Of a DNA stretch of 64,000 nucleotides, positions 13,899 to 64,000 are shown piece after piece. Position 1 is the first letter of the stretch. Every line of letters starts with the position of its first letter. Both the position numbers and the translations under genes were made by a program. The notes under the pieces are model-generated. The model saw nothing but the letters and a program-made list of their open reading frames with translations. It was not told the origin of the DNA and did no database searches. Source of the DNA: Podarcis tiliguerta (taxonomy: Eukaryota); assembly GCA_965153285.1 (NCBI GenBank), contig OZ229113.1. One strand, 5' to 3'.

Positions 13899-14069
<171 letters not shown>

Positions 14070-15650: not shown

Positions 15651-15665
15651 GGCCTGGAAATCTGA
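15651..15665 (+). CDS. BCLAF3: Probable BCLAF3 terminal coding exon (GLEI-stop), followed by 3' UTR
   Basis: Acceptor tatttctccttaaatag|GGC CTG GAA ATC TGA in phase 0. Followed by AT-rich UTR-like sequence and AATAAA at 16047. The short coding part makes the assignment uncertain. Confidence 0.6.
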   Translation, partial: GLEI

Positions 15666-16046
15666 GCTGCAGTACTGAAGGCAGTATCTCTGATTATGAT
15701 GATCGTTGCAAGAGAGCATCCGATGGCATTTGTCAAGAACTGAAATGGGAAAAGCAAAACTAATACTTTAATTTTTCTTGATAAAGATAATTTTATTTTT
15801 CATTAGTGGGATGTTGCAGAACTTTTTTACAGTTTTAATAATGGCTTTTCAAATACAGTATTCAACTGAACATTGTAGGGTTGCTCCTTTTACTTCCTCT
15901 TGCCGGCAAGTCAGAGAAAAAAAAAACAACCTGAAGGGAGTCTTTATTTATTGAATATTTCCCCCTCACTCTAAGCATGGTTTTATTACTAGACATTGAG
16001 TTGTTATACACAGAAGTTTATATGTTTAAAGTTTATTTGCTTATAT

Positions 16047-16052
16047 AATAAA
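16047..16052 (+). terminator. Candidate polyadenylation signal of BCLAF3
   Basis: AATAAA about 380 nt after the putative stop codon, in U-rich context. Confidence 0.5.
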
Positions 16053-19000: not shown

Positions 19001-19252
19001 TTTAAGCCACCACTTTTCACCTGTATGGGTCCGTTGCTCCTCACTCTCATGCCATGGCTGTTATAACTGGTCTACTCTTTTGCTCCCCTTCCTCATCCTG
19101 ACTTCATGCAAATCCAGGATTGTGATGCAACACTCCAAATCCTCCACTGGGGGCTGTGTGATGACAGCATGATATTTTTATGTATACAGGGAGATGTAAG
19201 CTAAGCACCAGTTTGCTTGCAGCTGCTTCTAGTTTGGTTACACCACACTTCT

Positions 19253-20510: not shown

Positions 20511-22763
20511 GATTAACTATGCATGGGAGAAAGAAAAGAACTTCATTTGGGAATAGTGCTTGATAAGGAAAAACTTGCTTCTTGGACTTAGAAGCAATAG
20601 TGATGGGATAAGCTCTGCCTCCAGTAGTATTCCTTAAAGTGTGTAAGAAGTCAATGTGTCCTTTGCTTTGGAAATACATAGGGTGATTTCCTCATGGACA
20701 TCTTGCATCTTGATTACTGACGTAATTAACACAACACAACCTTCCCCAACTCCCTTCTCACTGTACAGTGTGCAGTGTGTCTTTGTGTCCTCTAGAGGGC
20801 CACCTCACACTAAAAAAAAAATGCTCGGGGTTATCCACACTCATTTCCTCTGCTTTTCAGGGTCTTTGCAAATCATGGATCTTCCTCACATTCTGTTATA
20901 ATAGACACACCAGTAACAACAGAAAAGATGCACAGGTTGCCAGCTTCTTGCCTTGCTGTTAACCAGCAATCGGGACTCTTTGTCACAGCAGCAACAATGA
21001 GAACAAAGGTACCTGCTGCTTTTCTTCCCCACCCTTCCACCTTGCACCTTCAGATTATTTTGTAAATTGTAGCCAGACCCATATCAAGGCATGCCCCAGG
21101 TATAGTCTAGCCCTGGTTAGGAAAATCACCCCACCCCACCCCATTATGAGGTGGCGGGTTTTGCTGCTTCTGGCATTGCTTGCAGCAGCATGGGGACCAG
21201 GCTTAACCGCACTATCCCAGTTGACCACATGTGAAAAACTGGGATTCTGCAGTTGGAGAGCCTAGCCCTTGCACCCTTGCACCACTGCAAATAAGCTGGT
21301 GCCCACAGGGACTGGCACAGTGGGAGGCAGGGAGGCCAACAGCAGATGGAGCCATAGCCAGTGGCAGGCAGAGCCAACTCATTCTGGTTCTGTCCTCCTC
21401 ACTGGGATAAAACAGAAACTAACTGAGAGGAAGCTGACAGGTAGTGTGACCCCTTGGGCTGGCTGTAAGTAAGAAGGCAGGGAGGTGAGGGCCAGCTGAA
21501 AGCAGTCTGAGGATGGTGGGGCAGTGCCCCATTTGTCCAAACTGACCTCATCTAACTCAGGGCAGAAAGGAAACAAGGTAATTTCCCTTCCTCCTTGGAG
21601 CCACTGAGGCATTTTAAATGTGTGTGGCTGGCTTTGTCTGCTTTCAGGTTTGGAAAGGGGCAAAAGAAACCAGCTACCTCATCAAACAGTCAGACCCCAC
21701 CATATCTGGAAGTGAATTGTACACTCTATATTAAATTACTTTAAAAATCAATACAGTATAATGGGAAAGTGAGGAGAGGGGGTCTGTGTTTTCTTTGTTA
21801 GACTGTGTGTTTGGGGATGGTGTGTGTGTGTGTAGTTGAGTGAAGGATGAGAGGATTCTTGTGTGAAGAGTTGAGGGGGGAGGTCTTTAAAGAGAGAAAC
21901 TGCATTCAAAGGAGTACTTTTTATGTGATGAGGATCAAACGTCCATCTTCTTGGCATTTGGGTTCTGAGACAAGTTACATGTCTTCTAGTGTCACCAGTG
22001 TTCTTCTTGTGAAATAGACCTCTCTTAGAGCAGAAAACGATGGGTTGAAATATGTGGCTTGCACGTTTGGTATTTGGGGTTCAGACCCAACCTCTGACTT
22101 ATACTTATTCATTTTGTGATCCTGGCCAATAATCTCCCATCTAGTCCAGCACCTGGTTTGCAGCAGTAGCCAGCCAAACGTCTTTGAGGAATTTAAAAAC
22201 AACAGAGCATTTATCTATTCCATCATCGGCATTTGGTACTGAGGCAGAGAAAACGTGTGTTATGGCTCCTCTATATTACTGCTGCCAAATTCCTAATTGT
22301 GAGGCTTTTCTTCCAGTGTGTAAATGTCATGTGACTTTAAGCAACATCACTGTGTGTTCTGCATGCACACATATGGAAAATACACAAGTGCTGTAGTGGT
22401 GCATGCTACGTCCACAAATGATCATGAACTCCAGTAGAATTTATTGGGCTTCGTGGAGATAAAATTTTCTAGATACACTCAAGTATAGTGCAATATTTGC
22501 ATAAAGAATTCAGCAGCTCTAATCAGTTCTCCTACATTTTCAAGCAGGTATGACTCATTTAAGCAAACAGTGTTTAATCTAGGTCCACGAATCACAGTCC
22601 TGTTTACTCCTACATGCCATAGCATTTTGGCGACTCCGGTAGAGGTCTTTCATATCACCCACTGCCTGGTCCTTTTCCAGGAGTTGAGAAGTGCATCTAG
22701 ATCCAGATTAATGTCATAATTCAGATCAGGAGGTATTTTATTAATAAGTAAACGGGGGGGGGG

Positions 22764-23106
22764 GGGACTCAGGTGGCGCTGTGGGTTAAACCACAGAGCC
22801 TAGGACTTGCCGATCAGAAGGTCGGCGGTTCGAATCCCTGCGACAGGGTGAGTTCCCATTGCTCGGTCCCTGCTCCTGCCAATCTAGCAGTTCAAAAGCA
22901 TGTCAAAGTGCAAGTAGATAAATAGGTACCGCTCCGGCGGGAAAGTAAACGACATTTCCGTGCACTGTTCTGTTCTTAGTCCTGCTGGCCACATGACCCG
23001 GAAGCTGTACGCCGGCTTCCTTGGCCAGTAAAGCGAGATGAGCGCTGCAACCCCAGAGTCGGCCACGACTGGACCTAATGGTCAGGGGTCCCTTTACCTT
23101 TACCTT
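22764..23106 (+). mobile_element. Full-length Sauria SINE (lacertid type)
   Basis: tRNA-like head (GGTGGCGCTGTGG A box, GGTTCGAATCCC B box), the typical body and an (ACCTTT)n tail. Confidence 0.92.
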
Positions 23107-23399
23107 AAACACACATCTATATACAACACCCATCAACTGAACTCAACCTTGTCTAACTGACAAAGCTGAAAGGTTGGCTCTTACAAGATTCTATTCATTC
23201 AAGATACCGCCACATATTATTGTCAAGGGCTGAACCTTCTGCACGCAGAACATGTGTTCTACAACTGAGCTATGGCCCTTTAAAATACTCAGCTCTTCTT
23301 GCTATTTAAATTTTGAATAAATCTTAAGAATGTCGCCCCTCCTCCATTTAAATCTGCTTTTCTTGTCTCCTCCTCATGGCGGCCTTGAAAACAGGATGT

Positions 23400-25930
23400 C
23401 ACAGACCCGTTCCTGCCATGCACATGGCCTAAGAATAATTGTCGCACTGTAGGCACGGGCGTTTTAAAAAGCACTCCGCACTCCCCCTTGCTTCCCCCGC
23501 CGGCACTCATCTTCTCCGGCGTGCAGTGTGGCTTTGCGCGCGCTGCTTTGGCTTTGGAACCGAGTCCTTTTGCCAGGAAACCCAATTCTGCCCCGGTTGG
23601 CAGGATCCCGCCCCCGGGCGCCTGCAAGGGCGCCGCTTAACACTGCGCGAGGCGGTTTTTTGTGGGTGTGGCGGGACATGCGGCCAGTGTTGTGGGAGAA
23701 GTGGCCGGCGCCTGAAAAGCACCCGCGTCTCCGTGAACGAGGCAGTCCCCCTCCTGCGCTGGACTTCTCCCCGCGCCGGGCAGCCTGCTCCAAGGGCGAC
23801 TCCCCAACCCCATTTCCACCCTGCAGGCGCGCAAAGCGCCGCGCTCCGCAAGGGAGGTTTCTGCCGGGCGCGTGGGTTGCCACGCATTGCATACAGGGGG
23901 CTCCACAACAAGCACCTCCCTCTTTCCTACGATGATGATGATTACTACTACTATCCCTGTATGATTGTTGGAAAGGAGATTAGGCCCCACGAAGCTCGCC
24001 CTGTGGCCCCGCTTGCCCCCCCCCCCCGCCCTAAGCGGGCGACGCGTGTCCGGTTTTCTCCAGGCAGCTGCCGCCGCTGCTCGTCCGAAGGCGGTGCGCC
24101 GAGGCCGCCGCGGCGCGTTCTCGCGACACTTTCCCTTCTCGCTAGCGGTTATCTCGACGTTGTGGTGAAACCGGCGCCAGCCCGCTAAGCGAAGCGAGCC
24201 CGTTTTGCAGTAGCGCCTGCCGCTGCCGCCTCGGTTGTCCTGGGAAAGGGCGACGTCGCCGCCGCCGCCACCCCTCAGCCTCCCCATTCCCTTCCCGAGA
24301 ACCGCCACCGCCTCCCCCTCCGCTCTTGTTCCCGCCCTGGCGCGCGCGGGCGCGCGCAACCGCATCCACACGCGCACACTCGGCTCTCTCTCTCTCTCGC
24401 AGCCCCAGGTAGAATTCGGCTGCCTTCGCCCGCTCCTCTCCGCGCATCCCTCAGATTTGCAGGTGGCGTGTCAGGTGTTTCGCTTCGTGGTTCTCTTCTT
24501 CGCCGCCCCACCCCTTCCTCTTTTTTGACGCCAGGAAAAGCCTTTTTATTTTTTCTCGCTAGCGGGGGAAGCTTTTCGGAGCAGGAAATAAGATGCAGCT
24601 TCTCTGTTCTTCTTGCAACGGGCACTGACTAGCCGAGAGGAAGCCACGAAGTAGCAGCAGCAGCAGCTACAACGGGCGGAGGAGGAGAGGAGGGCAGCTG
24701 CACCGCCGCCTGGCTCGTCTCCTCTCCCTGCCAGACCTGCAGCCACCTCAAAACTTTCAGCCTGTCTGGCGGAGCCCCAACGCGACATCAATGGGTGAGT
24801 GTGGACGACACCGGCTGGGCTGGGAGTGCGCGGGAGTGCTCGTGCCTGCGCCTATCCCTCCCCTCCCGCCTCCTCTCTCTCTTGGCCAAAGGAGACTTGC
24901 TGCGTGGCTCATTGTAGAGACCAACCTTGCACGAGCCCCTCGACGTCGCTAGCAGGCCGAGGCAGCCAGGCTCTGCCCTCTGAACCAAGCCTGCAGGGAA
25001 AGCCTCATTGCATTGCATTATATTTTGAATAACAGCAATACTAGCAACCACACGTCGCGAGCTAGATCGGCGAACCGCGAGGGTGTGCCCCCCCCCCCCA
25101 ATGTTTCTTTTCTGGGTGTGTGCGCGTTTCGGTGCAGGGGAGCATCCTGCCTTATTCCCTTCGGAGACCTTTAACTCTTCGCTTGCCCCTTCCTCCCTCC
25201 CTCGGTGTTGACCCTCTTCGCGTCGCGCATGTGGCGAGATGTAACCGGAACCGTGTGAATGAAAGAAGGCCAAAAATAAAACAAAAACCTGAACCAAAAC
25301 AAAAACAGCACGGCGGCACCTTGCCATGCGCGGGCAAAATATGTGTGTTAAAGAACACACACACACACAGCCCTTCGCTCTCCTGTGGTGCCGCCCTGTG
25401 CACGACCCTGCGTGGCCAGCTGTAATGTGAGAGACGGGAGAAGGGCGCCTGGGGGCCCGAGACCGATGAAGTGGAGATAAGATAAAGCGGGGTGGGAGGA
25501 GAGCCTGTTTCCACTTCTTCTGCCTCTGTATTTTGTGTGTGTGAGTGAGAGAGAGAGAGAGGGAGAAGGCCGATGCAAAAATCAGCCCTCGCTGCCTGAC
25601 AGGAAATCGGAGGGGCGTGCTGTGCCTTTGACATTTTTTCGAGGGAGGGGAAGAGAGTCTCTCCCTTTCTCCAGCCCCCTTGCCCCTCCCCGCACCGCCC
25701 GAAATGCCTGGTTGGCAGCTTTGCACAGCATCTCTCCTCCCTTCCCTTGGAGACGCCTCATAGTCCATGATGAGCAACCCGAGGCTCTGCTGTGTAGCCC
25801 CGCTGGCTTACCTGTGTGCAGCTCTCTACGCCGGACTCTAGGGGCAGCTCTCAGACCTGGAGGTGTGGCCGGCTTTTGGAAGAGGCTGCGGCTGGCGAGC
25901 CTCATCGATCCTGGCAGCCATCCATCAAAG
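23400..25930. promoter_or_regulatory. SH3KBP1: CpG island / promoter of SH3KBP1, extending into intron 1
   Basis: Abrupt rise in GC and CpG content (GCC runs, CGCG tracts, GC-box-like CCCGCCC) around the ATG-containing first exon. Confidence 0.88.
24791..24794 (+). CDS. SH3KBP1: SH3KBP1 (CIN85) exon 1 coding part: ATG G
   Basis: CATCAATGG|gtgagt with a consensus donor. Splicing to TG GAG GCG at 45775 gives [10 protein letters not shown], the CIN85 N-terminus. Confidence 0.88.
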
Positions 25931-27994
25931 GAAAGGGCAGTCTAGGGTTACCAGATGTTGTTTGCCGCAGCACCACAGAGGAGGGATGGAGGGATCGTTC
26001 CGTATACGGTGTGTCCATTGAGCATCAGTGCTCTGAAATGTCCTCCCTCCACTCCCTCGCTCTTATTTTGTTAAAAAACTTCTAATTGGAAAGCCAAAAG
26101 GTATGCCTGATGTTAGAACATGGCTTTTCAGGAAAGAGAGCAGCAACAAACAAAGATTAAAACGTTGAGCGTAGTAGGGAGTTCATCATGGAGATAGAAA
26201 AGCCCAATAGGTTTGCGAGGAATCTCTTGTGTCGCATGTCAGCGAGAGTTAGGGAATGAATCATCCATTTATATCACTGTCAGGGGCTCTGGAGAGGCAG
26301 CCGTGCCAGGCACTAGCAATCTGAAGGGCAAGCGGCCTGTTTCTGCCTGAAGAAGGGGCTACATTCACGCTTCCACCATGTGTTTGTCATAAATACAATG
26401 TGCTCTCTGTTGCAAGCATTCACGCTTTTGGAAAGTGGGGTGTTGAGCTCTTCTGCCATAGCCACCCTATAGTGTCACATAGTTTTTTTAGAACATAAAA
26501 AACCCCACTTGTTGTATGCAATATATGTTTAGAAGGCAGCAGGCTGGAAGGAATAAAATGAGAGGAGTTTGGGCATTTTACAGCCAGTACATGAATATGG
26601 AAGGGTTTTTGGGTGGGGGGGAAGTCATTCCTTGTTGATGACTGAGCAAGCTTTTGAGCTGGCCAACTAAGTAGGGATTTGCAACTGTAGTTCCTGTGTG
26701 GGTCACATGATTTGCACCAGTTTTTCACTGCTGAGCTTCAGTTACTGCTGTAATATAATGAAGTTCATTCAGTATGTTGGTATTGCATTCAGATGCACTG
26801 ATCTGAGTTCAAATGCTATATTTAATTCACCATTCAATGCTTCTGATGTTCCAGTATTCAAGGGTAGAAGGATTGTGCTGGTCACCCTGACATTAAACTT
26901 TAATATACAACTTGGTGTGTGCATGTATTTTGCTCATTCATCCATATCTTGATTCAATTCTGCTACCCGTCAAGTTTAAATTGAGAAGGATCGTGCAATA
27001 TTTTGCTTCAGTACATTGATATTTTAGGGGAACTTAGTTTCTCAGACAATTTTTTTTGTACATTTCTTTCTGTATGTAGATTCTGATATAGATGTTCAGA
27101 GACTTAACCAAAAAAGAAACATTTTCTTTAGAGCTGGTGTTGCCAAATCTGTTACTGGGGATAGGGATGTGGTTGTCACATGCAACATTTTAGAATAAGC
27201 TTCAGATCTTGATCCTGAGTTTGTTTCTACCTCAATATGGTTGTTGAGAAATTAATGGTTTGCTTTGTACACATTTTGGCATTGATAGTGTCTTTTTGTA
27301 GTGATTGTTGGAGGGTATTGATAAATTTATTTATTTTTTACAGTATCACTTAGTTACTATCGCCTCTTAAGTTGTGGGCAAGTAACTCAATACAATGAAA
27401 ATAAAACTCATTTCAAACTATAAAATCAGAATTTACTTAAAATGCTTGCTGGAATAAAGAAATATTCAGTTGGTACAAGGTGTTCAACAGGGACAGGGCC
27501 TGTCTCACTTCAGCTGGAAGGGAGTTCCTTAAAATTGTGCTTGCGATACTGAACTCATGGCTCTTGGTGGACACAAGTCATGTATCCAAGCCATGGGGCA
27601 CTACTGCCTGTGACTCTCTAAAAGATGTCATTTATCAGGCAGGGATGTAAGGAAGGAATCAGCTGGTCCTTGAGGTATCCAGGACCTAAGTTCTTAAGAG
27701 CCTTGTACAAGAATCTTGAACCTTGCCTGTTAGGGTATGGGCAGCCAGTGCAAGCTTTTGAGCACCCAGGTTATGTGCTTGCAATATTCTGTCCCCATCA
27801 GGAACCTAGCTGCTGTGTTTTGCGCCAGCTAGAGCCTCCGGACCAGACCCAGGGGCAACCTCAAATAGAGCAATTCCTCCCCCATACCATTCAAATTATG
27901 CAAGGCATGTGCCTTCTGTACCCAGAAAGTCCCAGCTTCTGTGCTAAGAAAATCTGTATTCTGTTGTTAAGATGTATAATGCAGATTACGTATA

Positions 27995-28214
27995 CAGTAG
28001 AACCTTGGTTGTTGAACGCCTTGGTACTCAAACATTTCGGCTCCCAAATGCCGAAAACCTGGAAGTAAGTGTTCTGTTTTTCAGAAGTCGAACGTCTGAC
28101 GCAGCTGTCAGCTATTGTTTCTGGGATGCCTGCACCAATTGGAATCTGTGCCTTGGTTTTGGAACATTTCGGAAGTTCTGGAATGGATTGCATTCGAGAA
28201 CCAAAGTACCACTG
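27995..28214. mobile_element. Tc1/mariner-type MITE
   Basis: TA|CAGTAGAACCTTGGTT ... AACCAAAGTACCACTG|TA: imperfect TIRs and TA target duplication. Confidence 0.75.
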
Positions 28215-31200
28215 TACTGTAATAAGAAATGCCTTGGCTACTGTGTCTGCACCAGTTATATTTTGTGGCAGTTGGGTCTGAAGGTGCTTCAAGTTGCATA
28301 TGCAGCCTCTTATGTGTCCTGTCACTGTTAGTTTTACATTTTCATTTTTCTGAAGTTTGAACATTACCTGAAATGCAATGATTTGGAGCAGATCCAAAAT
28401 AGGTTTCTGCGACTGAAAGAACTCCTCCTGTTCACAGATGGAACCAAGATCCAGTGGATCTGCAGGAAGAGGAGGAAAAAGCAGTTTTCACAAATTCCTC
28501 CTGCAGAACTTCATGTCGCCTCTCATGCTGCTGTGGAGGGTGTCTAAACCTTCTGAAGAATATTTGGGGACACATAGTGCAAAGTAGTTGGTAAAAGTCA
28601 GCTCCCTCCTTCTGCTGATGGGAGGCCAAGGGATGCTGCTGCCAGGGGATACCTAACTAGGATCCAAACCATTATCCCAAATATTTGTGTGAGCTAACAG
28701 GGTCCTTCATCCTGTCTTATAGGCCCTCATCCACTCCTATTAATATGGATGATCTTCATACTGTTTGGAGGGATGCAATGTACTGTGTGTCCACATTACA
28801 TGACACAATTTGCTTTGTCTGTAGCAGGCAGTACTGCAGTGTGCCTCCCTACCACAGTAACCTTTGCTCCCTACCGCAGTAACATAACACCACCTGCTTC
28901 CCAAACATGTGCTCTCCCACTGAGCTACGGGCCTTAACTGGATTGATTTTTAGCTTGCTAAATTGTTAGTCATCAATGACAGACCTAAACACTTGTCATT
29001 TAAGACTCTCCCCCCTGTCTGAAAAAGGGATGGAGAAATGGTGGCCCTTGATGTTGCTGGGCTCCAACTCCCATCAGACTTAGCCAGCATGGCCAGTGGT
29101 CAAGGATGATGGGAATTGTAGTCCAGGAACATCTTAGAGGGCAACAAGTTCCCATCCCTGTTTTAAAGGAAAAGCTTTTCAAATTGTAGTGATGTGAATT
29201 TAGCCTATTAATTCACAGTCATTGTGAGTTACAGAATATATAATTTATTATAGTAAAGAGAAGGTTTAAATTGTTCCTTAAAATTTGAATTCCTTTGTTA
29301 ATGGTAAATACAACCATAACCATTTATCCAGTTGCAAAGAATGTGGACTAGTAAATATTTCGATGGAGAACCTAGGAGGGAGGCATGTCCTGAAGCGAAC
29401 TGAAAATAATACAGAACATGAAGCAAATTGACAGACTGCATAATAGAAAATACAAAGTTGAGACACATAAAACAAAATAAATACAAATTATTCAAATGTT
29501 TGTGTTGTTTCTTAACACATAGTTATATTGGGTATTGGACACCATTGATCTATGTTCAAGTTTGAGAAACCTGTAACATACTGAGAAACCTCATTTTTTT
29601 GTCATGCACATAGCATGTTGGTTTTTGTGTATATATTACATAATTTTTTCCCCTTCTAAAACTAAATTTACATTACAGAACCAATTTCCCACTGTTGCAT
29701 AAACCCTCATCTCTGGTTTGTGTCTAGTGTGCAGTCTGGTGTGCTGTTATTGCTTTGCTACTGGATAGGAGCATTTAACACTTGGATAACTCGACAGTGC
29801 TGATTTCTGTCCATTAGGGACTCACTCAGTGGAGAAAATAATTTACCCTCAAGGCTCTGAGATATATTAAACTACCATCTTGTGGTTAAAAACCTTACAA
29901 AGATTTTTTTTAAAGAGTTTGCTTTAATACTAACATGGTTTTCTTAAAATTGCAGGGTAGGAAGGAACCAAATGATAGTTGTGTTTGAAGCAACTGATGC
30001 AAGTCAGACAAGCCCCTACATAGTCACAATCCAGATCGCAGTGTACCCCAGTGGGGGAGTTGATATAAACTACATAATGTCACTGCTTTGAAAATAGATC
30101 CAGATAATACAACCATGAGAATCAAGCTGTATTATCTAGGGATGACCCAAACAGTAAAAGCAACAACCCAGCGTCTCTCGATATCCCTCCTGACAATTCA
30201 GCAAAAGTCTTCCATAGAGCCTGAAAATACCAACTGAATGCAAATCTCTGCAGTCTCTTGCTTTTAGTTGTGACGTATCACTGGTTTCCATGCTAGGTTC
30301 TCTTGAGCACCCGCATTATTTTGAGTATCTTAAGATACTTTCCTGCTGCAAGTGTGTCTCTCTGTGGGTCAGAATGTCAGAAATAGTGCTGGGAGTATAT
30401 TGCACTAGAGTGCCATAAAATACCAGTGATAATTTCCATTTGCCTTTGTGGCCTAATACCCAAAACTATTACATGTGTTTAAGATTAAAATGGTTATTTT
30501 TTTTCCATTTTCTGGGCCATTTTGTCGACTTTAATACCAGTATTCTGTATGTTCTTTATGATTGCTTGTAAGCTAGCTTGGCGTAGAAGTTGCTTTGTAA
30601 GCAGAGTTATGTGTTTCCAAAGAATGAAATGTTGGGACTGAAAAGCTGTTTGAGGGTGCTGTATAATAGTGTTGTGTGACTGAGTCAATTTCCAAGCAAA
30701 AGAAACACATGAAGCCAGCAAACATTATTTGGGAACCCCAGTTTGGTCTCTTCCTGAAACTGAGCCACAAAACCCCTGCACATTGGTTGCATTAATGAAG
30801 TCTCTAATTCCTGACCATCCACAGGACTGATGTTTGCAGAGCTGCTCCTTTTCTAGTCTTTGATCCATTCACACAGCCTAATTTGCATGTTGAAATATAG
30901 GTGAAGTTAAACTTTTCATGATTCACTTTATGAGTGAAGGTTGAGTGGCAGAGCAGCCAAACTACGTTCCTCCCATTCATTCATCCATTTCTGTTTTTAG
31001 TGTGTGTCTACCTTCTTCACAGAGTTGAAAAGTTCTGAAAGTCCACCTTGCCTGGCCACCTGCACTGTGCCAGCTTTTCTACTTGTCTGTTTCCCAGGGA
31101 TAAACCCATTAATTCTTCCTGCCATGGTATGTTATAAGCAGGGAGCAGGCATGCTATGGAAAGGTATTGTGAACATCTCCTCTAAGCTTGTGACTGCTCC

Positions 31201-32448: not shown

Positions 32449-32648
32449 NNNNNNNNNNNNNNNNNNNNNNNNNNNNNNNNNNNNNNNNNNNNNNNNNNNN
32501 NNNNNNNNNNNNNNNNNNNNNNNNNNNNNNNNNNNNNNNNNNNNNNNNNNNNNNNNNNNNNNNNNNNNNNNNNNNNNNNNNNNNNNNNNNNNNNNNNNNN
32601 NNNNNNNNNNNNNNNNNNNNNNNNNNNNNNNNNNNNNNNNNNNNNNNN
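32449..32648. other. Assembly gap (200 N)
   Basis: Run of N with a round length, typical of a scaffold join. True size unknown. Confidence 0.99.
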
Positions 32649-38880: not shown

Positions 38881-39101
38881 CGGTGGTACCTCAGGTTACA
38901 TACGCTTCAGGTTACATACACTTCAGGTTACAGACTCGGCTAACCCAGAAATATTACCTCGGGTTAACAGAAATTGTGTAGCAGCAGTGCGGCGGCAGCG
39001 GGAAGGCCCCATTAGCTAAAATGGTGCTTCAGGTTAAGAACAGTTTCAGGTTAAGAACAGACCTCCAGAACGAATTAAGTTCTTAACCCGAGGTATCACT
39101 G
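38881..39101. mobile_element. Tigger/pogo-like MITE, copy 2 (inverted relative to copy 1)
   Basis: TA|CGGTGGTACCTC ... GAGGTATCACTG|TA. The interior is the reverse complement of 37857-38096. Confidence 0.88.
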
Positions 39102-39120
39102 TAATTCTGTTTTAAAGCTA

Positions 39121-39611
39121 CCGTATTTTTCGCCCTATAGGACGCACTTTTTCCCCTCCAAAAATGAAGGGGAAATGTGTGTGCGTCCTATGGGGCGAAT
39201 GCAGGCTTCGCGGACCTCTCCGCAAGCAGCGGGAGCGCTCCAGCTGCTGGTGGAGAGTTGCCTGCATGCTGAAGCCTGCGCGCGCTGAGCTCAGCGCGTC
39301 CAGGCTTCGCGGACCTCTCCGCTAGCAGCGGGAGCGCTCCCGCTGCTGGCGTTGAGTTGCCTGCATGCTGAAGCCTGCGCGCGCTGAGCTCAGCGCGTCC
39401 AGGCTTCGTGGACCTCTCAGCAAGCAGCGGGAGCCAGCACTGGGCTCCCACGGCTTGCAGAGAGCTGCCTGTTTGGGGGCTGGGGTCGGGGGAACCTCGG
39501 GCTTCCCCAACCCCGCGCCTGGGGGGGGAAATAATTTTTTTCCTTTATTTCCCCCCAAAAAAACTAGGTGCGCCTTATGGGACGGTGCGTCCTATAGGGC
39601 GAAAAATACGG
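39121..39611. mobile_element. Non-autonomous Tc1/mariner-superfamily (Tc2/pogo-like) element with an internal 99-bp tandem array
   Basis: TA|CCGTATTTTTCGCCCTATAGGACGCAC ... GTGCGTCCTATAGGGCGAAAAATACGG|TA: perfect TIR and TA TSD. Repeat units start at 39202, 39301 and 39400. Confidence 0.92.
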
Positions 39612-40614
39612 TATACAAATTTGGGAACATCAATATATCTTGAAGTGAATTCCACAGTTTAACCATCCCCTGTGCAGATAAGCACTTTCTTTAGTCTGTT
39701 TTGAATCTTGAGTCAGTTTCATTGGATTTCCCTGAGTATTATGAGCGAACGAAAAACTTCTCTCTATCTTCACCATGCATTTTTTTTAATACACCCATCA
39801 TGTCCCCCCACCCCCTAGGTCTTTTCTAAGCTAAAAATCCCTAAATAGGGTTACCTTTCTTCATGAGACAAGTTGCTTGATCATTTTGCTGCTGACTTTC
39901 AGTACATGGCTGCCTGACTGTTGGCTAGCCCCATGGATTATGTAGCTGTATCAAGTGTTGAGAAAGCTATGTTGGTTGCTTGTTTGCTCCTGGGTCCAAT
40001 TCAAGATGATGGTGTTAACTTTTAAGGTTTTTAAATTATTTGGTTCTGGGGTGACTCATAGGATGCCTTGAAAATCCATCCCCATGTGATAATCAGATGC
40101 AGCCTGCTGGCATCTGAGCTTGGAGAAGGCCCCTTTGTGTTGTGTATTTTCTTCTCTTCAGGATGCCCTCAGAGCCACATTTTGAACACTTGTTGCTTTG
40201 GAAAGCAGGCGAAACCATTTCACTAAGGCTTTGGGGACCTTATCCGTGGGCAGTGATTAGTTAACGTTGAATGCTGCCAGTTAATTTTATTACTGTATCT
40301 AACATGGTTGAATGATTTGTTTGATTGGATTTTTGATGTTCATGTGTTTTATTATTATGACAAAGTTATTAGTCACCTTGGCTGCTCTTTATGAGTTGAA
40401 AAGGTAGCATGATAATGGAAACATAAACTGTAATATGTAAAGCCATACAGGAAAGAGATAGATTTTGATGTATGGTAGCTGTTTCTTCATTATGATTATG
40501 CTCATTATTTCATAAGGCACATGCTTTCCATGCATAAAGTACAAGGTTCATTCTCCAGCATCTCAAGGCACTCTTTTCTGAAACCCCAGAAAGCTGCTGT
40601 TAGTCAGTGTAGAC

Positions 40615-40862
40615 CAGGGGTAGGCAACCTAAGGCCCGGAGGCCGGATGCGGCCCAATCGCCTTCTCAATCCGGCCCGCGGAAGGTCCGGGAATCAGTGT
40701 GTTTTTACACGAGTAGAGTGTTTGCTTTTATTTAAAATGCATCTCTGGGTTATTTGTGGGGCATAGGAATTCGTTCACCCCCCCCCCAAATATAATCTGG
40801 CCCACCACATGGTCTGAGGTGCGGTGGACTGGCCCATGGGTGGAAAATGTTGCTGACCCCTG
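40615..40862. mobile_element. hAT (Charlie-like) MITE
   Basis: CAGGGGTAGGCAAC ... GTTGCTGACCCCTG termini, with perfect 8-bp TSD GTGTAGAC (40607-40614 and 40863-40870). Confidence 0.92.
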
Positions 40863-40888
40863 GTGTAGACTGTAGTGAGCTAACTGTA

Positions 40889-41243
40889 AAGGTAAAGGTA
40901 AAGGGACCCCTGAACATTAGGTCCAGTCGTGGCCGACTCTGGGGTTGCGGCGCTCATCTCGCTTTACTGGCCGAGGGATCCGGCGTACAGCTTCTGGGTC
41001 ATGTGGCCAGCATGACTAAGCCGCTTCTGGTGAACCAGAGCAGCGCACGGAAACACCATTTACCTTCCCGCCGGAGCGGTACCTATTTAGCTACTTGCAC
41101 TTGACGTGCTTTTGAACTGCTAGGTTAGCAGGAGCAGGGACCAAGCAACGGGAGCTCACCCCGTTGCAGGGATTCAAACTGCTGACCTTCTGATCGGCAA
41201 GCCCAAGGCTCTGTGGTATAGACCACAGCGCCACCCACGTCCC
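40889..41243 (-). mobile_element. Full-length Sauria SINE
   Basis: Reverse complement of the 22764 element, with a 13-bp TSD TGAGCTAACTGTA (40876-40888 and 41244-41256). Confidence 0.93.
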
Positions 41244-42480
41244 TGAGCTAACTGTACCAATGGTCTAACTCGGCATAAGGCAGCTTCCTATATCATTCTA
41301 TTAACACCTGTAGTTGGGTACTATAGATTCACCCATAAAGGTTTCCTTAGTAAACAACAACAACAATGCTGATAGATGTGGACATCTGATGCTGAGTGGT
41401 CATTTGGGAAGTCTAGGATGTTTTGCAGGCAAGGAAGCCTGTGTGTGTGAAGAACCCTGCTCTGCTGCTTACCGCATTTTGACTATCTCATCACCTCATA
41501 TAGTTAAGTTTAAAAGAAAAGACCAATCCGCCATCCCTAAAAGAAATTCCTTCTATGTTCTCTCCCTCACCCTTATGAAAAAAGCAGGAAAACAATGCCT
41601 GAAACAGAATAACAGGATTTGGCACAGCACTCGCTTAAACTAAGTATGGTTAATGTTAATCAGTTTCTGATGGCATAGCAAACTTTGGTTAACTATAAAA
41701 GGGGAAACAAAAGTCTCCAAACCACTCCTTCTGTGCAGCCATTAAGTTGCACACAATCGGTGCCTTTGACAAAGGTATCTTACTGTCTCTAAATATCAGT
41801 CTAAAATCTTTGTTCCAGGCTTCTTGTCAGTGGATTCATTATGGTTACAGCAGCATTGGAAATAATTGATTTTAATGCCACCTTACGGGTGTTTTCTTTG
41901 CTGTTCCGATTTCACTGTTGAAGAATGTCCTTAACAACCGATTGTGTTGGCATGGGAACAAACTTTCACCTTATGATCAAAAATCACGTGTACTGCTTTG
42001 GTACATATTACTTTTTAGGGAATACCTGAGGAGATGTTCACTATGTCATATTCACAATAGTTCTAGGGAACTCAGTGGACTTAAGACTAAATCAAAGCGT
42101 TGCTTTCAAAGGCGCTTCAAGTATGCCTTTGTCGAACACATTCCTGTGACCTACAGGAGTCACTGAATGATTTGCGTTTGACTTTAATTGGAGCTCTGAG
42201 ACTTTTAACATTTGTCACAGCTCTTTTATTAATGTGGAAATACTGCAAATATGTACAGACTAAGGGTTTTACTGTTGGAATTCTGTATGTCTGTGCAGAT
42301 TCGAGGTAGCAGTGAGAGAGGCTATTAAGTAGCATACTTAATAAGATGAAATGACCTATAGTGTCCAGGAGTGTTTATCCTCCTGGATGCTTGATATATA
42401 ACTCTCTGTTTCTAAACAACTGCCAATAACATGTTAATTGTTTACTCTGGGTCTATCAGGAGCAAACTCGTTTAAGATAC

Positions 42481-43004: not shown

Positions 43005-43977
43005 CATAGTTGTCAACTGTCTCTTATTTGGCGGGAAACTCCATTATCCCAGCGCCATGTCCTGCTGCTATCCCTTATTAATGATGCCCCTTAAATTTCC
43101 TGGGTTTCAAAGGAAGCCCTGCCGGCCAGGGAGGAGGGAGGCTCCAACTGTGTTGCTTGGCTGCCTGGCCCACCCCCCCCCGGCCTCCTCTCACCAGCCT
43201 CGGCCCCCGGGAGCCTCTCCCCGCCAGGACTGGCGGGAGCCTCGGGCCCTTCCACCGCCATCCTCCTCGTGGCTGCCAAACTGATCGTCTCTGTCTGGGG
43301 CCTCCCCCCTGCCCGTTGCCGCCGCCGCTGCTCCCACTAGGCCATACTGTGGCTGCACTGTCGAAGGACCCGGATTAGATGGGCAGCCTGGTGTGGTCTA
43401 TGAATTGCTGAGGAGCCTTGAGAGGAGAGCGAGGGCAACCATAGAGAAAGCAGTTCAGAGAGAGGAGGAGGAGGTGGGGGAGGAGGTGGAGACACGGGCA
43501 GGTGTTCCAAGGGCTAACCATAGAGGGGGAAAGCGGAGGAAGGACCGCAAGTGCTTCTCCCATAGAGTTGTAGTGGTAGACTAGCATAGATAGTCTGATC
43601 TGCGGGTTTACTTCGGGCGCTATTCCCCCGCCCCCACACCTCTCTTCCTCCCGCCCCCTGATGGAACTGAGAGCTGCAGAGGGAGCATGAGAGAAAAGAT
43701 AGAGAACTGCAGCAGCATCTTCATAGCTTGGACTTCGTTTTGCGCGAAAAGTGGTTGCTGCTTGTAGTTATTTAATTGCAGTGTTTCATTAGCTGGTGTC
43801 TTGAGCAGCAACCTCTGGAAATGAAGGGCTAAAAACCGGCGCTGCTCTCCAAAATTATCTGGTCCCTTTTAACTTTGTATTTTAGCTGGTTGACTAAAAT
43901 CCCTTATTTTGGCTGCTGATCCCTTATTTTCGAGGCCGCTGGTCCCTTATTTTCAAATCTGTAAGTTGACAGCTATG
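43005..43977. mobile_element. Non-autonomous hAT element (CATAGCTGTCAAC family) with GC-rich interior
   Basis: TIR CATAGTTGTCAAC / GTTGACAGCTATG, perfect 8-bp TSD ATTCTGGT (42997-43004 and 43978-43985), and repeated subterminal TCCCTTATT motifs. No transposase ORF. Confidence 0.92.
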
Positions 43978-45774: not shown

Positions 45775-45932
45775 TGGAGGCGATAGTGGAGTTTGACTAC
45801 AAGGCTCAGCATGATGATGAGCTGACAATCACTGTCGGTGACATAATCACCAATATCCGGAAAGAGGATGGAGGTTGGTGGGAAGGACAGCTTAAAGGCA
45901 GAAGAGGTTTGTTCCCTGACAACTTTGTAAGA
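45775..45932 (+). CDS. SH3KBP1: SH3KBP1 (CIN85) exon 2, first SH3 domain (SH3A)
   Basis: ttttccctttccag|TG ... AGA|gtgagt, 158 bp. Encodes (V)[52 protein letters not shown]. The position downstream of BCLAF3 on the same strand supports SH3KBP1 over its paralog CD2AP. Confidence 0.96.
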
Positions 45933-46851
45933 GTGAGTACAAAGTGAAAACTGTTACTGTTCTTGTGTTGCTGGCTTGTATTCTCTTCTTTCAATGCAGG
46001 TTTGCTATCTTGGTGATGTGTATGCTTGTATCTCCAAAATACTTTTGACGTTTATACAAGACCAGCTGTCATAAAAGACAATTCAAAGGGTCATAGTAGA
46101 TGGCAGATGGGAGCGACATTCCTACCATCCATTTGCACTGACTCTTCCCCATTCTCACCCCAGAATTGCACACCTCCAGCTATTTTTGAAGAAACAATAA
46201 GCCCCTTGAGTGAGTTTGTGATTTTGAGCAGAAAAAAATGTCTGTAGGAAAGGGGCTAAGCACCCAGTAGCAGCCTCCCCAGACTGTTTCAATTTCCACC
46301 CTTTAAGGGTAAGGAGGCTATATGCATCTATACATAACAACTAATTTGGCCCTGACCCATGGTGAAAAATGTTCAGTCCAGCCAAAATGAAAGTAAGGGC
46401 AGCTGTTGAATAATTGAAAGGGGAAAGGCCTGCTTGCGATGGGGTTATGCTGTTCCTAAAATATTTTGTTTACAGCTTAGAGGTACTTGTCATACCCAGC
46501 TTTATTCCTGAATTTTCAGGTGTCAGCTATGATCCAGTTTCAGTGGTTGTTCCAGGTGCACCCGTGCCTGAGAGCTGGAAACCTGATCACTCTTTCATGA
46601 CAACCTTTATGTTGGAGTGTTGCAATGCACTTTTTCTGGGTTTGTCTGTGAAGATGGTTTGGAAGCTGCATTGGTAAAAGATACCACTGTGTGACTTAGC
46701 TTGGAAAGCTTAGAATTTAAGTCTGAATGGTCATGGTATACTGGTATTGAAAAATTACATTGGTAACCACAGTGTTTTCTGGACCCAGTTCAGTCCTAGG
46801 CTCCAGATATCTCTGTGAGGTGTAAAATCATTCAGAGAGACCCGGTTCTTA

Positions 46852-47171
46852 AAGGTAAAGGGACCCCTGACCATTAGGTCCAGTCATGGCCAACTCTGGG
46901 GTTGTAGTGCTCATCTCGCTTTATTGGCTGAGGAAGCCGGCGTACAGCATGACTAAGCCGCTTCTGGCAAACCAGACCAGCGCACGGAAATGCCATTTAT
47001 CTTTCCGCCAGAGTGGTACCTATTTATCTACTTGCACTTTGACGTGCTTTCGAACTGCTAGGTTGGCAGAAGCAGGGACCGAGCAACGGGAGCTCACCCC
47101 ATTGCGGGGATTCGAACCGCCAACCTTCTGATCAGCAAGTCCTAGGCTCTGTGGTTTAACCCACAGCGCCA
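46852..47171 (-). mobile_element. Sauria SINE (small internal deletion, slightly 5'-truncated)
   Basis: Same sequence family as 40889-41243, with an 11-bp TSD CCCGGTTCTTA (46841-46851 and 47172-47182). Confidence 0.92.
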
Positions 47172-48803
47172 CCCGGTTCTTAGTTCCAACTTCTTCCGAG
47201 GCCAGATTTGTTTCTTCAAGAAGCAGGGCCCTCGAAGCTGCATCAGGGCTTTCAAAATCCTTTTCACCAGCTGCCTGTTTAGCTCCCTCTTGTTTTCCTT
47301 ATTTGTGAAACATCACCTTACCCCGCTTTTCAGCTTGTTTTCAGGGAATTAATTTACATAGATTGTGCTTTAATTTTAATCCTGTTTTAATTACCGTGTT
47401 GTGCACTGCTCTTTAAGTATTCATTGAAAAGCAATACAGAGATTCTGTAAACAGAATAAATACAGAACGATGCTGCATCATGACTGTTTTCACTGGTTTT
47501 AACATTGTGCTTCTTATAGTGCAAGATGACTTGCAAACAAATAGTGTTAGATCAGCGTTGAAAGGAGAAATGGCATCTAAATGGGCTTGGAAGGTTTGCA
47601 GTAAATCTGAGAAGACCAAGCAAATTGGCCCAGTTCATTCATAAGTGCAAGTACTTTTGTTGCCTTAGAAATGGCATAGGCATCTAGCCTGTCTGAAGCC
47701 ATTTGTACTTGCTGTGTTCTTTCTACTCATTTTCTCCACTGATAACTACAATAAGAAACAGGATAGGAGGCAGAGAGGCTGGCTATTTTAACTTGAATCT
47801 GAATGTGGGTTACTATTTGTTAGCAATGCAGTTTGAAATTCTAGGAAAGGAGTAACTTAGTATTTAGAGACATGTGCATAACCTGATGACTGACAGCTGA
47901 AAGTGTAGACAAAGTCCATTGAATTGCATTTTATTGAGGTCATGTGAAAGTACTTTGGTGGCTCATGCAGAAATGCAAGCCACTGCTTGATAGGTGCAGT
48001 CGTCAAGTAACGAACACATATGTGTACCTGATTAAAGAATAGCTTCATTGGAAATGGAGAGCGCTGTGTAGATAAACAATTTTGGGAACACTTAAGTGGA
48101 ACTGCTGTTTATAAATTCAGTAAATATTTTTTTTCTTAAAAAGTAACATGCAGCAGTTAGTTTGTGAGTTTTTTGCAATTACGTTTGCAATATGTGGACT
48201 TGAACAGCTTTGGAGTAACTGGTAGCATATTAAATGTTTCCTGTGTATGCTAGCACCGAAGTCATGCTGCCTTTTATTCTTCCAAATACTGCTCCAAAAT
48301 GCTTTATATGGAGGATTGAAAGTACTGTATATCTGAAATTCTGGAATGTGTTCTGTGAGAATCCCACTAGAAAAGCATCCCACTAATGTTCCGGGTACTT
48401 TTGACTATAACTTCCACGAACACAGTGCTGGCTGGACCTGATGAGTATTCTAGTGCAAAACACAACAAAAGGCATTGGGTTGCTGAGGGCTGCCTTAAAG
48501 ACTGGAGAGGGGCATGGCTTTCTGGAGGGCTGCAGCAAATAGTAAATACTTCAATAACTTTTTAGAAGCAAGAGATCAGCATAGTCTCCGTGATGATTTT
48601 GCAAGGCACTTTGAGGACAACATTGCCTGCCTCCATGCGGACTTGAGTGCTTCCACTGATACAGTGTTGACGTATATGATACACTATGCTGTCCTTTGTG
48701 GGACCCATTTCCTTTGTTGATGCCTGGGATGTGAAGAAGACGCTTGCCGCTGTGCAGCCTACTATATGTTTTCTTGGCCCATGGCCATCCTTGTTGCTTC
48801 ATG

Positions 48804-48991
48804 CGTAGCTGTCAACCTTCCCTTTTTTTGCGGGAAATTCCTTTATTCCAGTGCCGTTTCCCGCTGCTTCCCGCTGCTATCCCGGATTGTCAGATATCCC
48901 ATAGACTGTCCCTGGGACAGGTGAGGCTGCTGATCCCTTATTTTCGAGGCTGCTGATCCCTTATTTTCAAATCTGAAAGCTGAGAGCTATG
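48804..48991. mobile_element. Short MITE of the CATAGCTGTCAAC hAT family
   Basis: CGTAGCTGTCAAC ... GCTGAGAGCTATG. The right end GCTGCTGATCCCTTATTTTCGAGG...TTTTCAAATCTG is shared with 43005-43977. Degenerate TSD GCTTCATG / GCTTCAGA. Confidence 0.82.
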
Positions 48992-49638
48992 GCTTCAGAT
49001 GTGGTAATCACTTTGTTGTGTGATGTGTGTTCCCTGCTGCCTTGATTGTCCTGGATCTCTGTGGCTTGTGAAATTGTTGCATTTTTGTTTTCTGTTGTGT
49101 GTGGAAATTTTATTGAAAGTTGCATTGTTGTTGTTTTTATTTAAACTGGCTTAGAGATTTTTTTTATTTTAAGGTGGCAGTAATCTTTTAGCAAATAAAT
49201 ATATAAGAATTCCATATAGCTGGAAACCTTTTCATTTACCATACTGAAGATTAAGCTTTGTTGTGTGCTGGCAGATTTAAAAAGGAAGAGTAATGGAAAC
49301 AGCACAGATACATGTATGCACATAATACTAGATTCTAATCTAGCTCTGAGTGACTGAAAACAGATGTAGGCTATTTAATTTTCCAACTTTCTCTTTTAGG
49401 GTTTACATGTTTGTTGTTAAGATGGTGTAGTGGTGCTGGGGGGTTAACGTGGGGGGGGGTGGACACTACTAAGTTAGCCATAATTCAGCTGCATAGCAAT
49501 GATTGTACAGGAAGATACTGAATTATGCTATTGAAAATGGTCTCTTTTGGATGCTCTGCTCTGTAGATAACTGTCTTGTGAACTAACACTTAAGAATAAA
49601 ATGCAGAAGCTACTATTTCCTAAGTCTTTAATTTGAAT

Positions 49639-51242
49639 CACGGGTGTCAAACACAAGGCCCGCGGGCCAAATCCGGCCCGCCAGACCTCGTCATGTGGCC
49701 CGTGTAGCCGCTGCTGGCCGCCAGCCTTCACCTTTTATTCTCGCTTTTTTTTTTCCGACACAAGAAAGTTTACATGGTGCGGCTCCCTACTCGCCCCCCC
49801 CCCCGTCGCTCTTAAGGACGTGGCTGCTGCTTCAAATGTCCCCGCGTCTCTCAACCTTCGCCTTCGTCGTCGGGGGCTGAAGCGAGGCGGGCAGCTGGCT
49901 TCTCTCTCCCGCTCACTGCTCAAAAAGAGCAGGCGGAAGGTCAGGTCTCTCCGTGCCGCGGAGGGGGAGTCTTTCTCCTCGGAGAAACTTTTTTATTCCA
50001 GCCTTGGATCTTCTCCGGGGATGCTGGATCCTCCCCGCCCGCCCCCCAAACTCCCCTTTTCTTCCAATCCTCAGCCACCTTGGAATCCCTCTTGGTGGGA
50101 GAGAAGCGTTTTTGGCTTCTGCGGAAGGTTCCCCTTGCTGCCGCTGCCACCAGCAGCGGCAGCCCCGTCTGTCTGAAACGGCCGCTGTTTGGTTTAATAA
50201 CACGATTTTGTTATGTCTGCTCAGCTCCGGCCAAGCGGCTCCTTCTCTGCGAGCGGATCCATGTGCGTCCACATTACATCTGGGGTTCCCACGGCCGCAC
50301 TTCCCGTGTCTCCCCCTCCGCCCTCCACCGAGGTGCGTCCCCTTGCAACATCTGAAATTATTTTCTCATAAACACCAACTTTGGGGCTCTCCCTCTCTGC
50401 CCCCCTCCGCTGCTCTCACGCTCTCCCCCCTCACCAATCCCAGGATCTGATTAGATTTCCAATCACAGCCCAGTCCGCAATCGGATTTCTGATTTCAGCC
50501 AGGAGCAAGCCAGCAATCCGGAGCATCCGCGTCTTCTCCTCGCCAAACTCTTCGCGTTATTATATCCGTTCGCCTTGCCTCCAACTCCTCTGCATTCCCC
50601 CCTCCCAGAATCGCACATCAAATGCAAAGAGATGCTGATGGTGGCGGCGGCGGCGAGCTTGGTGGCGGGAGGAGGAGAAAGCAGGAAGAGAGAGAAAATA
50701 AAATCCCCACCAGATGTTAAGAATCCATCATCATCATTTTTTAATTTTTTTAAAAGGAGAGTCCGCTCCCAGGGTGGGTGGCTTCGAAAGCCCCTCTCTC
50801 CTCGCATGTCCTGCTATTGCTTCCCGATCCTTCCCGGCATGCAAACTCGCCCTGCGGGAGGCGTCCTCTTCTCCTCCACGCTGGATTTCACCAGCCCGGG
50901 GCTTCCCTTCCTCTTCATTTCGCCTCCCTCTCCATCTTTGCACAGCCAGCCTTTCCAGGACCGACGATGCCCGTGATCAAGTTGTTCTTTGGGAATATGG
51001 GGTGGCTGGTGGGGGGGGGTGAGTGGGAGAGAGAGAGAGGCGCGCGCACACACTCCAAACACCCTTAAAATGAATGTAAAGTAGATCGTCTACATTATTA
51101 CAAAAAACAGTAATAATTGAATGCAGTGACAATAATTTATGATAAAAAAGAGTGGACACATAGTCCTACAGATACAACCGGCCCTTTGAGGGTGACCAAA
51201 CTGCTGATGTGGCCCCCGATGAATTTGAGTTTGACACCTCTG
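49639..51242. mobile_element. 1.6-kb non-autonomous hAT (Charlie-like) element carrying CpG-island-like sequence
   Basis: TIR CACGGGTGTCAAAC / GTTTGACACCTCTG, GGCCCG subterminal motifs and perfect 8-bp TSD ATTTGAAT (49631-49638 and 51243-51250). The interior is GC/CpG-rich with no transposase-like ORF. Confidence 0.92.
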
Positions 51243-51496
51243 ATTTGAATATTGACAAGCCAAAAAGTGAAAATGTGGCAAGGAAGAAGGCTCAGAATTG
51301 AGTGGTCAGGCCTACATTTCTAAAATATCCTTGAGAGAATTTTCAGTAGACAAAAGAGGAAGAAGTAAGCTTTTGAAATGTACTTGGGGAGAGAATTAAG
51401 TTTATCAGATAGTTGCCCTTTAATAAGCTTGTGCTGAATAAGCAAATAATAATGTTTTGTACATGTTGGGGTACGGTAGTTTGTTTTTGTTACAAA

Positions 51497-51507
51497 GATA
51501 GATAGAT

Positions 51508-51556
<49 letters not shown>
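51497..51556. repeat. (GATA)n microsatellite
   Basis: Direct reading. Confidence 0.95.
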
Positions 51557-51557
<1 letters not shown>

Positions 51558-52683
51558 AGTTGCACTCCTCATTCAAGTGTTTTCCCCCTCTAGCAATTGT
51601 ATTTGACTATGCAGCTCAGAGATGGGAAGATTTTGCTGATAGTAAATGCGGAGAAATATAAAGCAGGAAACTGAGGTGACAAACCAGTACTTGTTGATTT
51701 TAATTTGCGTTTGCATATGTATCTGATACGATCGTGGATAGCTGGTAAAATGTATGCTCCATCAGTGACCTTATTTCTCTCTGAATGTTCTCTCACCTTC
51801 AAACAGCCTGCAGAGTAGGGTGACGCCTCAGCAGATGCACCTTCTGAGCTACCGAATGAATGTGCTGCAGGATCTCAGCTGCTTCCGCTGGTTGATGCAC
51901 AATACTGGCAACATTTTTGCAGATGTGGCTGCAGGTGGTTAGTATGCTGTGAATCATGGCATTCGTACCAATAATCATGTCAGTTTCTTGGCAGTAGTGG
52001 CAGATGTCTAAATAAACCATTGAACTTCCATTTAAACCCACTGCAAAAGTTAGCAAAACTGAAAGGTATTTAGTTAGGTTTCCTTGCCAGCAGACTAAAT
52101 GAGCAGAGCTGAGCAGCTGCATCTCTTTTGGTCAAGAAAGCAAGAGAGACCTCTTTTCCCATAGAACTTTTCTGTTGTGTACAGTGATACACACGCCAAA
52201 ATTACCAGAGGGATTCATGAAATGCACATAGAATTAAAGACTTTAATTGTAGGTGGTCCTTTCTAATTGCATAGTTATTACCACACAAATATAGAGCTTC
52301 TTAACAGTGGGTTGGCTGACACTTGCCATTTCATCCTGTTTGATACCAGTGTAGCAAACCTGTTATTGTAAAGCATAGTATTCACTCTTTTTCTCAACAA
52401 ATGCACACCTTGAGAGTTGGTGCCTTGTCCTTTTGCAAGTTAATATCAGTAATGGCTCTTCTCTGAGGTTGTATGTAATTGGAAAGAAAGTGCAAGCATC
52501 CAGATTTCTCCACAATTCAGTTGGGTGGATAGCATAAAAAGTAAATTGCCAGAGATTAAACATTAGTTAGCTATTGTGACTAAGGCAGGGTAAAATATTG
52601 GTTTCTGCTGTAGGTGAAATAAGTTGCATCTCTTCCCTTTATGACTAATTTGAAAGGTCTCTGAAGTGTATTAAGCTATCAGT

Positions 52684-63686: not shown

Positions 63687-64000
63687 CATAGCTGTCAACC
63701 GTCCCTTATTTGGCAGGAAACTCCTTTATCCCAGCGCCGTGTCCCACTGCTGTCCCTTATTGATGATGTCCCTTAAATTTCCTGGGTTTCAAAGGAAGCA
63801 GCTCCTCTCCCTCCCTCCCTGCCGGCCAGGGAGGAGGGGGGCTTCAACTGTGTTGCTTGGCTGAGTCTAAAGACGTCTGTGGGGTGGATGAGCTTGCATG
63901 CCTTGTGCCGATGAAATCGGCCACGTTGCCTGGGGACTCGCTTTTGCTCAGCGCTTCCCAGCGGAGAGGTGACGGTGGTTTTCCTTGCTGCATCCCCTTT
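63687..64000. mobile_element. Left end of a third CATAGCTGTCAAC-family hAT element, running off the window
   Basis: 63687-63863 aligns by eye with 43005-43163. The sequences are unrelated beyond that point. Confidence 0.85.

Follow-up and report, generated by a model that had tools for sequence, protein, structure and literature searches.

The second intron of SH3KBP1 in Podarcis tiliguerta contains a block of GC-rich sequence that looks like a second CpG island of the gene. The locus raises the question of whether this block is a regulatory element that belongs to SH3KBP1 or DNA that arrived with a transposon and, in the latter case, where the transposon obtained it. The stretch of DNA analysed here (the window) is 64,000 nucleotides long. 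In this window, the block proves to be the interior of a transposase-less hAT-type element of 1,604 bp, located at 49639-51242 in SH3KBP1 intron 2. The locus as a whole is likely to represent one very recent, probably polymorphic insertion of such an element, which carries its CpG-rich interior as passive cargo.

The identity of the host gene is established by an exon at 45775-45932, which encodes the SH3A domain of SH3KBP1 (best PDB match 2bz8, E 2.3e-30; CD2AP is lower, at 71 bits). The element starts 3,706 nt past the end of this exon on the gene's strand side. Elsewhere in the window, the stretch from 23351 to 25650 passes CpG-island criteria (2.3 kb, GC 0.61, observed/expected (o/e) CpG 0.86) and is likely to be the SH3KBP1 promoter and first exon. 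Two other stretches, 39051-39650 and 46851-47250, likewise pass these criteria and could conceivably be repeat cargo as well. The window also contains a run of Ns at 32449-32648.

The element is assigned to the non-autonomous hAT-type transposons by its target-site duplication (TSD), its terminal inverted repeats (TIRs), its target pattern and its lack of a transposase (Table 1). Similarity between the two TIRs extends to about 35 nt in a gapped alignment, and the element's ends are of the CAGGGGTGTCAAAC type. The right terminus, CAGAG, fits the pattern YARNG, whereas the left terminus, CACGG, deviates from it at the third base. Elements of the hAT superfamily usually prefer the target pattern nTnnnnAn, and the duplicated sequence fits it with T at position 2 and A at position 7. 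None of the 18 open reading frames (ORFs) of at least 50 aa in the element has a Pfam match at E<=1, and no transposase remnant was found among them. No tandem repeats were detected, and a text search of the literature with its terminal word gave no match.

Table 1. Coordinates of the element, its parts, its deletion variants and a splice-like interval
Feature	Position	Strand	Remarks
Left TSD copy	49631-49638	.	ATTTGAAT, perfect 8-bp duplication; empty-site contigs keep a single copy ('both = 8')
Right TSD copy	51243-51250	.	ATTTGAAT, perfect match to left copy
Left TIR	49639-49654	+	CACGGGTGTCAAACAC; 13/16 positions equal to right TIR
Right TIR	51227-51242	-	Reverse complement is CAGAGGTGTCAAACTC
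Left terminal region common to very abundant family	49639-49704	+	Hairpin fold of -32.6 kcal/mol; GGCCC-type subterminal motifs
CpG-island-like interior ('cargo')	49705-51059	.	GC 57%, CpG o/e 0.74; no protein or RNA family match
AT-rich right subterminal region	51060-51161	.	Common to larger subfamily; X1 contig 50903-51120 continuous with interior
Right terminal region common to abundant family	51162-51242	-	Ends in TIR 51227-51242
Internal-deletion variant 1	50114-50745 missing, TTG filler	.	Organism A: X1 joint 50113 to 50746, depth 75
Internal-deletion variant 2	50030-50833 missing, T filler	.	Organisms E and F: joint 50029 to 50834 in two X13 contigs (depth 75) and in X15
Splice-like 60-nt interval	50959-51018	+	Putative: acceptor TTTCCAG/G, ATG at 50967, donor GGG/GTGAGT at 51019

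This architecture is not expected by chance. A scan of the window for perfect 8-bp duplications that directly flank an inverted repeat of at least 13/16 positions returned four cases: the element studied here, an element at 43005, a 248-bp MITE at 40615-40862 and one TA-repeat artefact. The same structure occurs at a mean of 0.04 cases per window across 100 Markov-simulated windows. No further copy of the element's termini exists within the 64-kb window. When the element was compared with the window by blastn, two short matches were the sole result (22 and 30 nt, E 0.002-0.007); both are taken as chance or low complexity. The same comparison rules out the SH3KBP1 promoter island as the donor of the interior. 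A search of Rfam at E<=1 returned two chance-level matches below 20 bits. One of them pairs the left hairpin (49637-49706) with the mir-9209 precursor at 19.4 bits, against a gathering score of 90, with an E value of 0.84. Some miRNA families descend from transposon hairpins, and this weak match is probably due to chance or reflects such transposon-derived families.

Other elements of related type are present in the window. The element at 43005-43977 (973 bp) is of hAT type, with a perfect duplication ATTCTGGT, TIRs CATAGTTGTCAAC and CATAGCTGTCAAC, and a GC-rich interior (GC 0.55, CpG o/e 0.46). Its ends differ from those of the studied element, and the two have no sequence in common beyond 30 nt of low complexity, in keeping with their placement in unrelated families by the initial annotation of the window. 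The terminal word CATAGCTGTCAAC of the 43005-type family has 9 matches in the window versus 2.1 expected (for example, at 63687-63699 and 46519-46531), and the extra matches may mark further members of that family. The 248-bp element at 40615-40862 has a perfect 8-bp duplication GTGTAGAC and TIRs CAGGGGTAGGCAACCT and CAGGGGTCAGCAACAT. This third hAT-like MITE is located within a CpG-island-like stretch (40551-41250). A MITE of about 188 bp at 48804-48991 has 43005-type ends (CGTAGCTGTCAAC at one side and the reverse complement CATAGCTCTCAGC at the other), TCCCTTATTTT subterminal repeats and an imperfect duplication (GCTTCATG and GCTTCAGA). Its contig word depth of 170,000-370,000 in three lizard runs indicates that it belongs to an extremely abundant family.

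The interior of the element at 49639-51242 differs sharply in composition from its surroundings. Positions 49710-51050 have a GC content of 0.571 and contain 79 CpG dinucleotides, which corresponds to a CpG o/e of 0.74, compared to 0.31 and 0.17 in the two flanks and 0.32 in the whole window. In a Gardiner-Garden-type scan (length >500 bp, GC >55%, CpG o/e >0.65), an island of 1,400 bp is called at 49601-51000, with GC 0.564 and o/e 0.79. The right end of the element (51051-51242) is AT-rich, with a GC content of 0.385. The initial annotation had described a CpG-island-like block at about 49.7-51.05 kb, some 3.7 kb downstream of SH3KBP1 exon 2, which has an AT-rich right end, lacks a transposase and is bounded by hAT TIRs with a perfect ATTTGAAT TSD. 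Each part of this description agrees with the measurements given above.

The history of the insertion can be read from public sequencing runs. Logan contigs of four runs were aligned to 48600-52400: X1 from organism A, X5 from organism B, X13 from organism E and X15 from organism F; the other organism A runs (X2-X4) and organisms C, D and G stood outside this comparison. Organism A is the best-matching species and has the same species label as the source of the window, with flanks that are identical or within about 1%. One 623-nt contig of X1 (record 3) joins 49630 to 51243 with 0 mismatches. Eight letters at this joint fit both sides, which means that the site carries ATTTGAAT only once, and the contig is unbranched across the site with a depth equal to that of the flanks. 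The joint is the same in X5, whose flank is about 2% diverged. In X13, which is about 4% diverged, 49594 is joined to 51243 with TCTTTA between them, an arrangement that amounts to the same empty site with 30 bp of flank deleted. Organism E lacks the 30 bp immediately left of the insertion site (49595-49624), and organisms B and E both have an 8-bp insertion, AAGTTTTG, after 51449.

Excision of hAT elements normally leaves a footprint, and three clean single-copy sites therefore indicate that the ancestral state was empty. Because the site is empty in organisms A, B and E, the copy in the window postdates the divergence of these species. At least one allele lacks the insertion in another animal that bears the same species label, although contigs demonstrate presence rather than absence and X1 could in principle carry a filled allele too. 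The insertion is very young and is probably polymorphic. The view that it brought the whole CpG-island-like block into the intron, which the initial annotation had put forward, is borne out by the empty sites in these three runs, each with a single ATTTGAAT, next to the flank deletion in the case of X13.

The interior itself is present in the same runs. Contigs of X1 cover 49799-50113, 50084-50795 and 50903-51120 with 0 mismatches and word depths of 221, 166 and 208, respectively (range 166-221), compared to 9-19 for flanking contigs. Contigs of X5 and X13 span the same interior ground at about 97-98% identity; interior and flank depths are about 62-67 and about 20 in X5, and 25 (core) and 12.6 in X13. 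Since the interior is found at 97-100% identity in runs whose SH3KBP1 site is empty, it must occupy other loci. The roughly 1.35-1.45 kb between the shared ends does so in all four genomes sampled and is over-represented most in organism A, where interior contigs are about 10-15 times as deep as flanking ones. Contig word depth is not copy number, and a figure of about 10-15 copies is only a rough reading, according to which there are many interior copies in organism A and few in organisms B and E. The initial annotation had treated the element as a one-off; it is instead one copy of an amplified subfamily.

Depth also delimits the portion of the element that is common to a much larger family. 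In the bin at 49616-49742, word depth is about 11,000-29,000 versus 10-20 in the flanks, with loose ends starting after 49704. At the other end, the bin at 51140-51266 reaches about 8,500-30,000, with loose ends before 51162-51176, and the adjacent bin at 51013-51139 has depths of 500-824. Thus, what the element has in common with the very abundant family is confined to about 66 bp at its left end and 70-80 bp at its right end. An X15 contig from organism F (49643-49837) spans the junction of the left terminal region and the interior, which shows that ends and interior travel together in other species too. Two internally deleted forms were also recovered. Internal deletions are the usual product of interrupted gap repair in cut-and-paste elements, and their structures imply that the long form is ancestral to both variants. 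Together, the empty site in the same species label and the many apparently identical copies of the contig-covered 1.2 kb indicate that hAT elements were active very recently in a lacertid.

The differences between species bear on the question of methylation. Among the 19 best-supported interspecies differences listed in the element, eight are TpG or CpA in the window where organisms B, E and F have CpG, and one is the reverse; 113 further differences are spread across the whole stretch at 48600-52400, flanks included. In these best-supported differences, CpG loss amounts to about 8% versus a change of less than 1% at other sites, values that serve as an indication rather than a measurement. 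Such a bias from CpG to TpG and CpA suggests that the cargo is methylated rather than protected in the manner of an unmethylated island. On this reading, the element is a CpG island by composition only.

Mammalian SH3KBP1 reportedly starts SH3A-less isoforms from an internal promoter in the same intron, and the initial annotation had built on this to suggest that the insertion could supply a promoter or enhancer. In its full form, the proposal casts the island as a newly gained promoter or enhancer from which SH3A-less SH3KBP1 transcripts start, or as the source of an added exon. The literature lends support to the mammalian background only as far as the many isoforms known for SH3KBP1 (PMC5940257). 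The motifs that had been pointed out are present: CCAAT at 50434 and 50459, around CTGATTAGA, and splice-like sites GGAAG/GTCAGG at about 49939 and TTTCCAG/G at 50958/50959. With its island-like composition, two CCAAT boxes and a TATA-like motif upstream of ATGs, and an acceptor/donor pair at 50958/51019 on the same strand, the interior resembles what such a promoter or exon would require. However, an insertion that is missing in three of three DNA samples, one of them with the same species label, cannot be a conserved internal SH3KBP1 promoter, and its CpG losses resemble those of methylated DNA. No run listed as matching the stretch is on record as RNA. Contigs of a presumed RNA run continue through the splice-like sites with no sign of splicing; the X15 contig at 50879-51019 spans the TTTCCAG/G acceptor in this way. 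Splicing of the 60-nt interval onto exon 2 (phase 0) would bring translation to a TGA at the sixth codon of the interval. One donor-like site is a derived mutation: the GT of a candidate exon running from ATG 50213 to GAG/GTGCGT arose by a CpG-to-TpG change, the other three species reading GCGCGT, and this candidate was rejected. Use of the insertion as a promoter or exon of SH3KBP1 is thus highly improbable.

The initial annotation regarded the element as a Pack-hAT, that is, as a transposon that captured a gene-proximal region. The architecture demanded by this reading stands, since TIRs and a TSD occur without a transposase, but no host donor was matched in Pfam, word-based, phmmer, PDB or Rfam searches. 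A word-based protein search with the 165-aa ORF at 49953-50447 gave no match, nor did an exhaustive phmmer search with the 133-aa ORF at 50575-50973 against 1.84 billion representatives. A phmmer search of the PDB with six ORFs of the element returned nothing significant (best E 0.07). The best candidate for an exon running from an ATG to a splice donor lies inside the 133-aa ORF and extends from ATG 50632 to AGG/GTGGGT at 50774 (47 codons, MLMVAAAAS...); searched against the protein atlas, this 47-aa candidate found low-complexity look-alikes only. Another candidate (ATG 50967 to GGG/GTGAGT) has 17 codons, which is too short to search. The Pack-hAT reading is plausible but unproven.

Where, then, could the interior have come from? 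A 1.35-kb block with a CpG o/e of 0.74 is unusual unless it was recently unmethylated in the germline, and recently unmethylated vertebrate DNA consists mostly of host CpG islands. This favours a germline-unmethylated host CpG island as the source, and on grounds of composition and analogy we judge the chances that the interior had such an origin to be about even. It may instead be the family's own central region and never have been part of a host gene, in which case the family would be an orphan non-autonomous hAT family and its interior could be non-coding sequence left over from an autonomous element, a piece of some other repeat (an LTR, for example) or horizontally transferred DNA. Its island-like look would then be due only to GC-richness and youth. 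This origin would account for an interior that resembles no protein, domain or RNA family in the searches run and that, in several species, exists in multiple copies linked to the termini. The CCAAT boxes, the TATA-like TTATAT at 50560 and an AATAAA at 50697 could equally be LTR-like. Precedent comes from eight Anolis hAT families that have similarity only in their TIRs and possess unique central regions (PMC3014272). Against it, an o/e of 0.74 over 1.35 kb would be hard to keep at the methylated rate of decay observed, and inspection by eye of the interior's edges, with an LTR origin of the cargo in mind, reveals no TG...CA boundary that has a short duplication of its own. An origin outside any host gene region is accordingly credible but rather unlikely.

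A passive-cargo model consistent with a host-island source can be outlined. The interior would go back to a single acquisition that predates the divergence of organisms A, B, E and F, perhaps by repair or template switching within an older element. The loaded element would then have multiplied, most recently in a burst within organism A. Mobilisation would occur in trans, through a hAT transposase that is encoded at another locus, binds the shared ends and moves the element by cut-and-paste, the interior being carried along passively. Integration of hAT style at ATTTGAAT in SH3KBP1 intron 2 made the 8-bp duplication. Once at new sites, copies would be silenced by methylation and their CpGs would decay.

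Animal Pack-TIRs are analogous to the Pack-MULE and Pack-TYPE elements of plants. Tan et al. (2021) described 370 Pack-TIRs in 100 animal genomes, with hAT as the most frequent carrier at 208 (PMC8277862). The SH3KBP1 element is like these Pack-TIRs, and Pack-hATs in particular, in having TIRs and a TSD without a transposase and an interior unrelated to the transposon, but the parental locus that defines the class was not found here. Multicopy Pack-TIRs number only four in animals (1.4% by the paper's own figure), and the present element, which is multicopy and has deletion derivatives, is in this respect unlike most of them (PMC8277862). A second point of reference is Anolis carolinensis, in which Novick et al. 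(2010) described young hAT families whose TSDs are 8 bp long, whose termini follow YARNG and whose central regions are unique, together with 'incorporation of extraneous DNA' (PMC3014272). Orphan families of this kind, for example hAT-N4_AC, are matched here in the squamate host, the 8-bp TSD, the CA-type termini, the young age, the confinement of similarity with relatives to the ends and the family-specific central region (PMC3014272). Unlike the hAT-N4_AC type, the present element has a lacertid host and a strongly CpG-island-like interior, and the likeness is one of description rather than of sequence comparison.

What distinguishes the SH3KBP1 element is the direct evidence of an empty allele combined with apparent recent amplification, and the fact that an entire annotatable "CpG island" is really a segregating transposon. 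Among amniotes, cut-and-paste transposons that still move are uncommon, and it is rare for a Pack-type element of an animal to have multiplied. For SH3KBP1, the finding carries a caution: the assembly's 'second CpG island' is a segregating repeat insertion and not a conserved regulatory element.

If the cargo is indeed a host promoter island, the family would offer a natural system for studying how DNA transposons capture the 5' ends of genes, whether a CpG island remains unmethylated after being transplanted, and at what frequency insertions of this kind give rise to new promoters or poison exons. Plant Pack-MULEs are biased towards the GC-rich 5' ends of genes. A broader and more doubtful proposition is that wall lizards harbour an active hAT system that repeatedly captures DNA of promoters or CpG islands unmethylated in the germline and then multiplies the elements so loaded. 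Were it true, this system would be an animal counterpart of the plant Pack-MULEs, and would seed genes such as SH3KBP1 with ready-made CpG-rich promoter modules that still segregate in populations.
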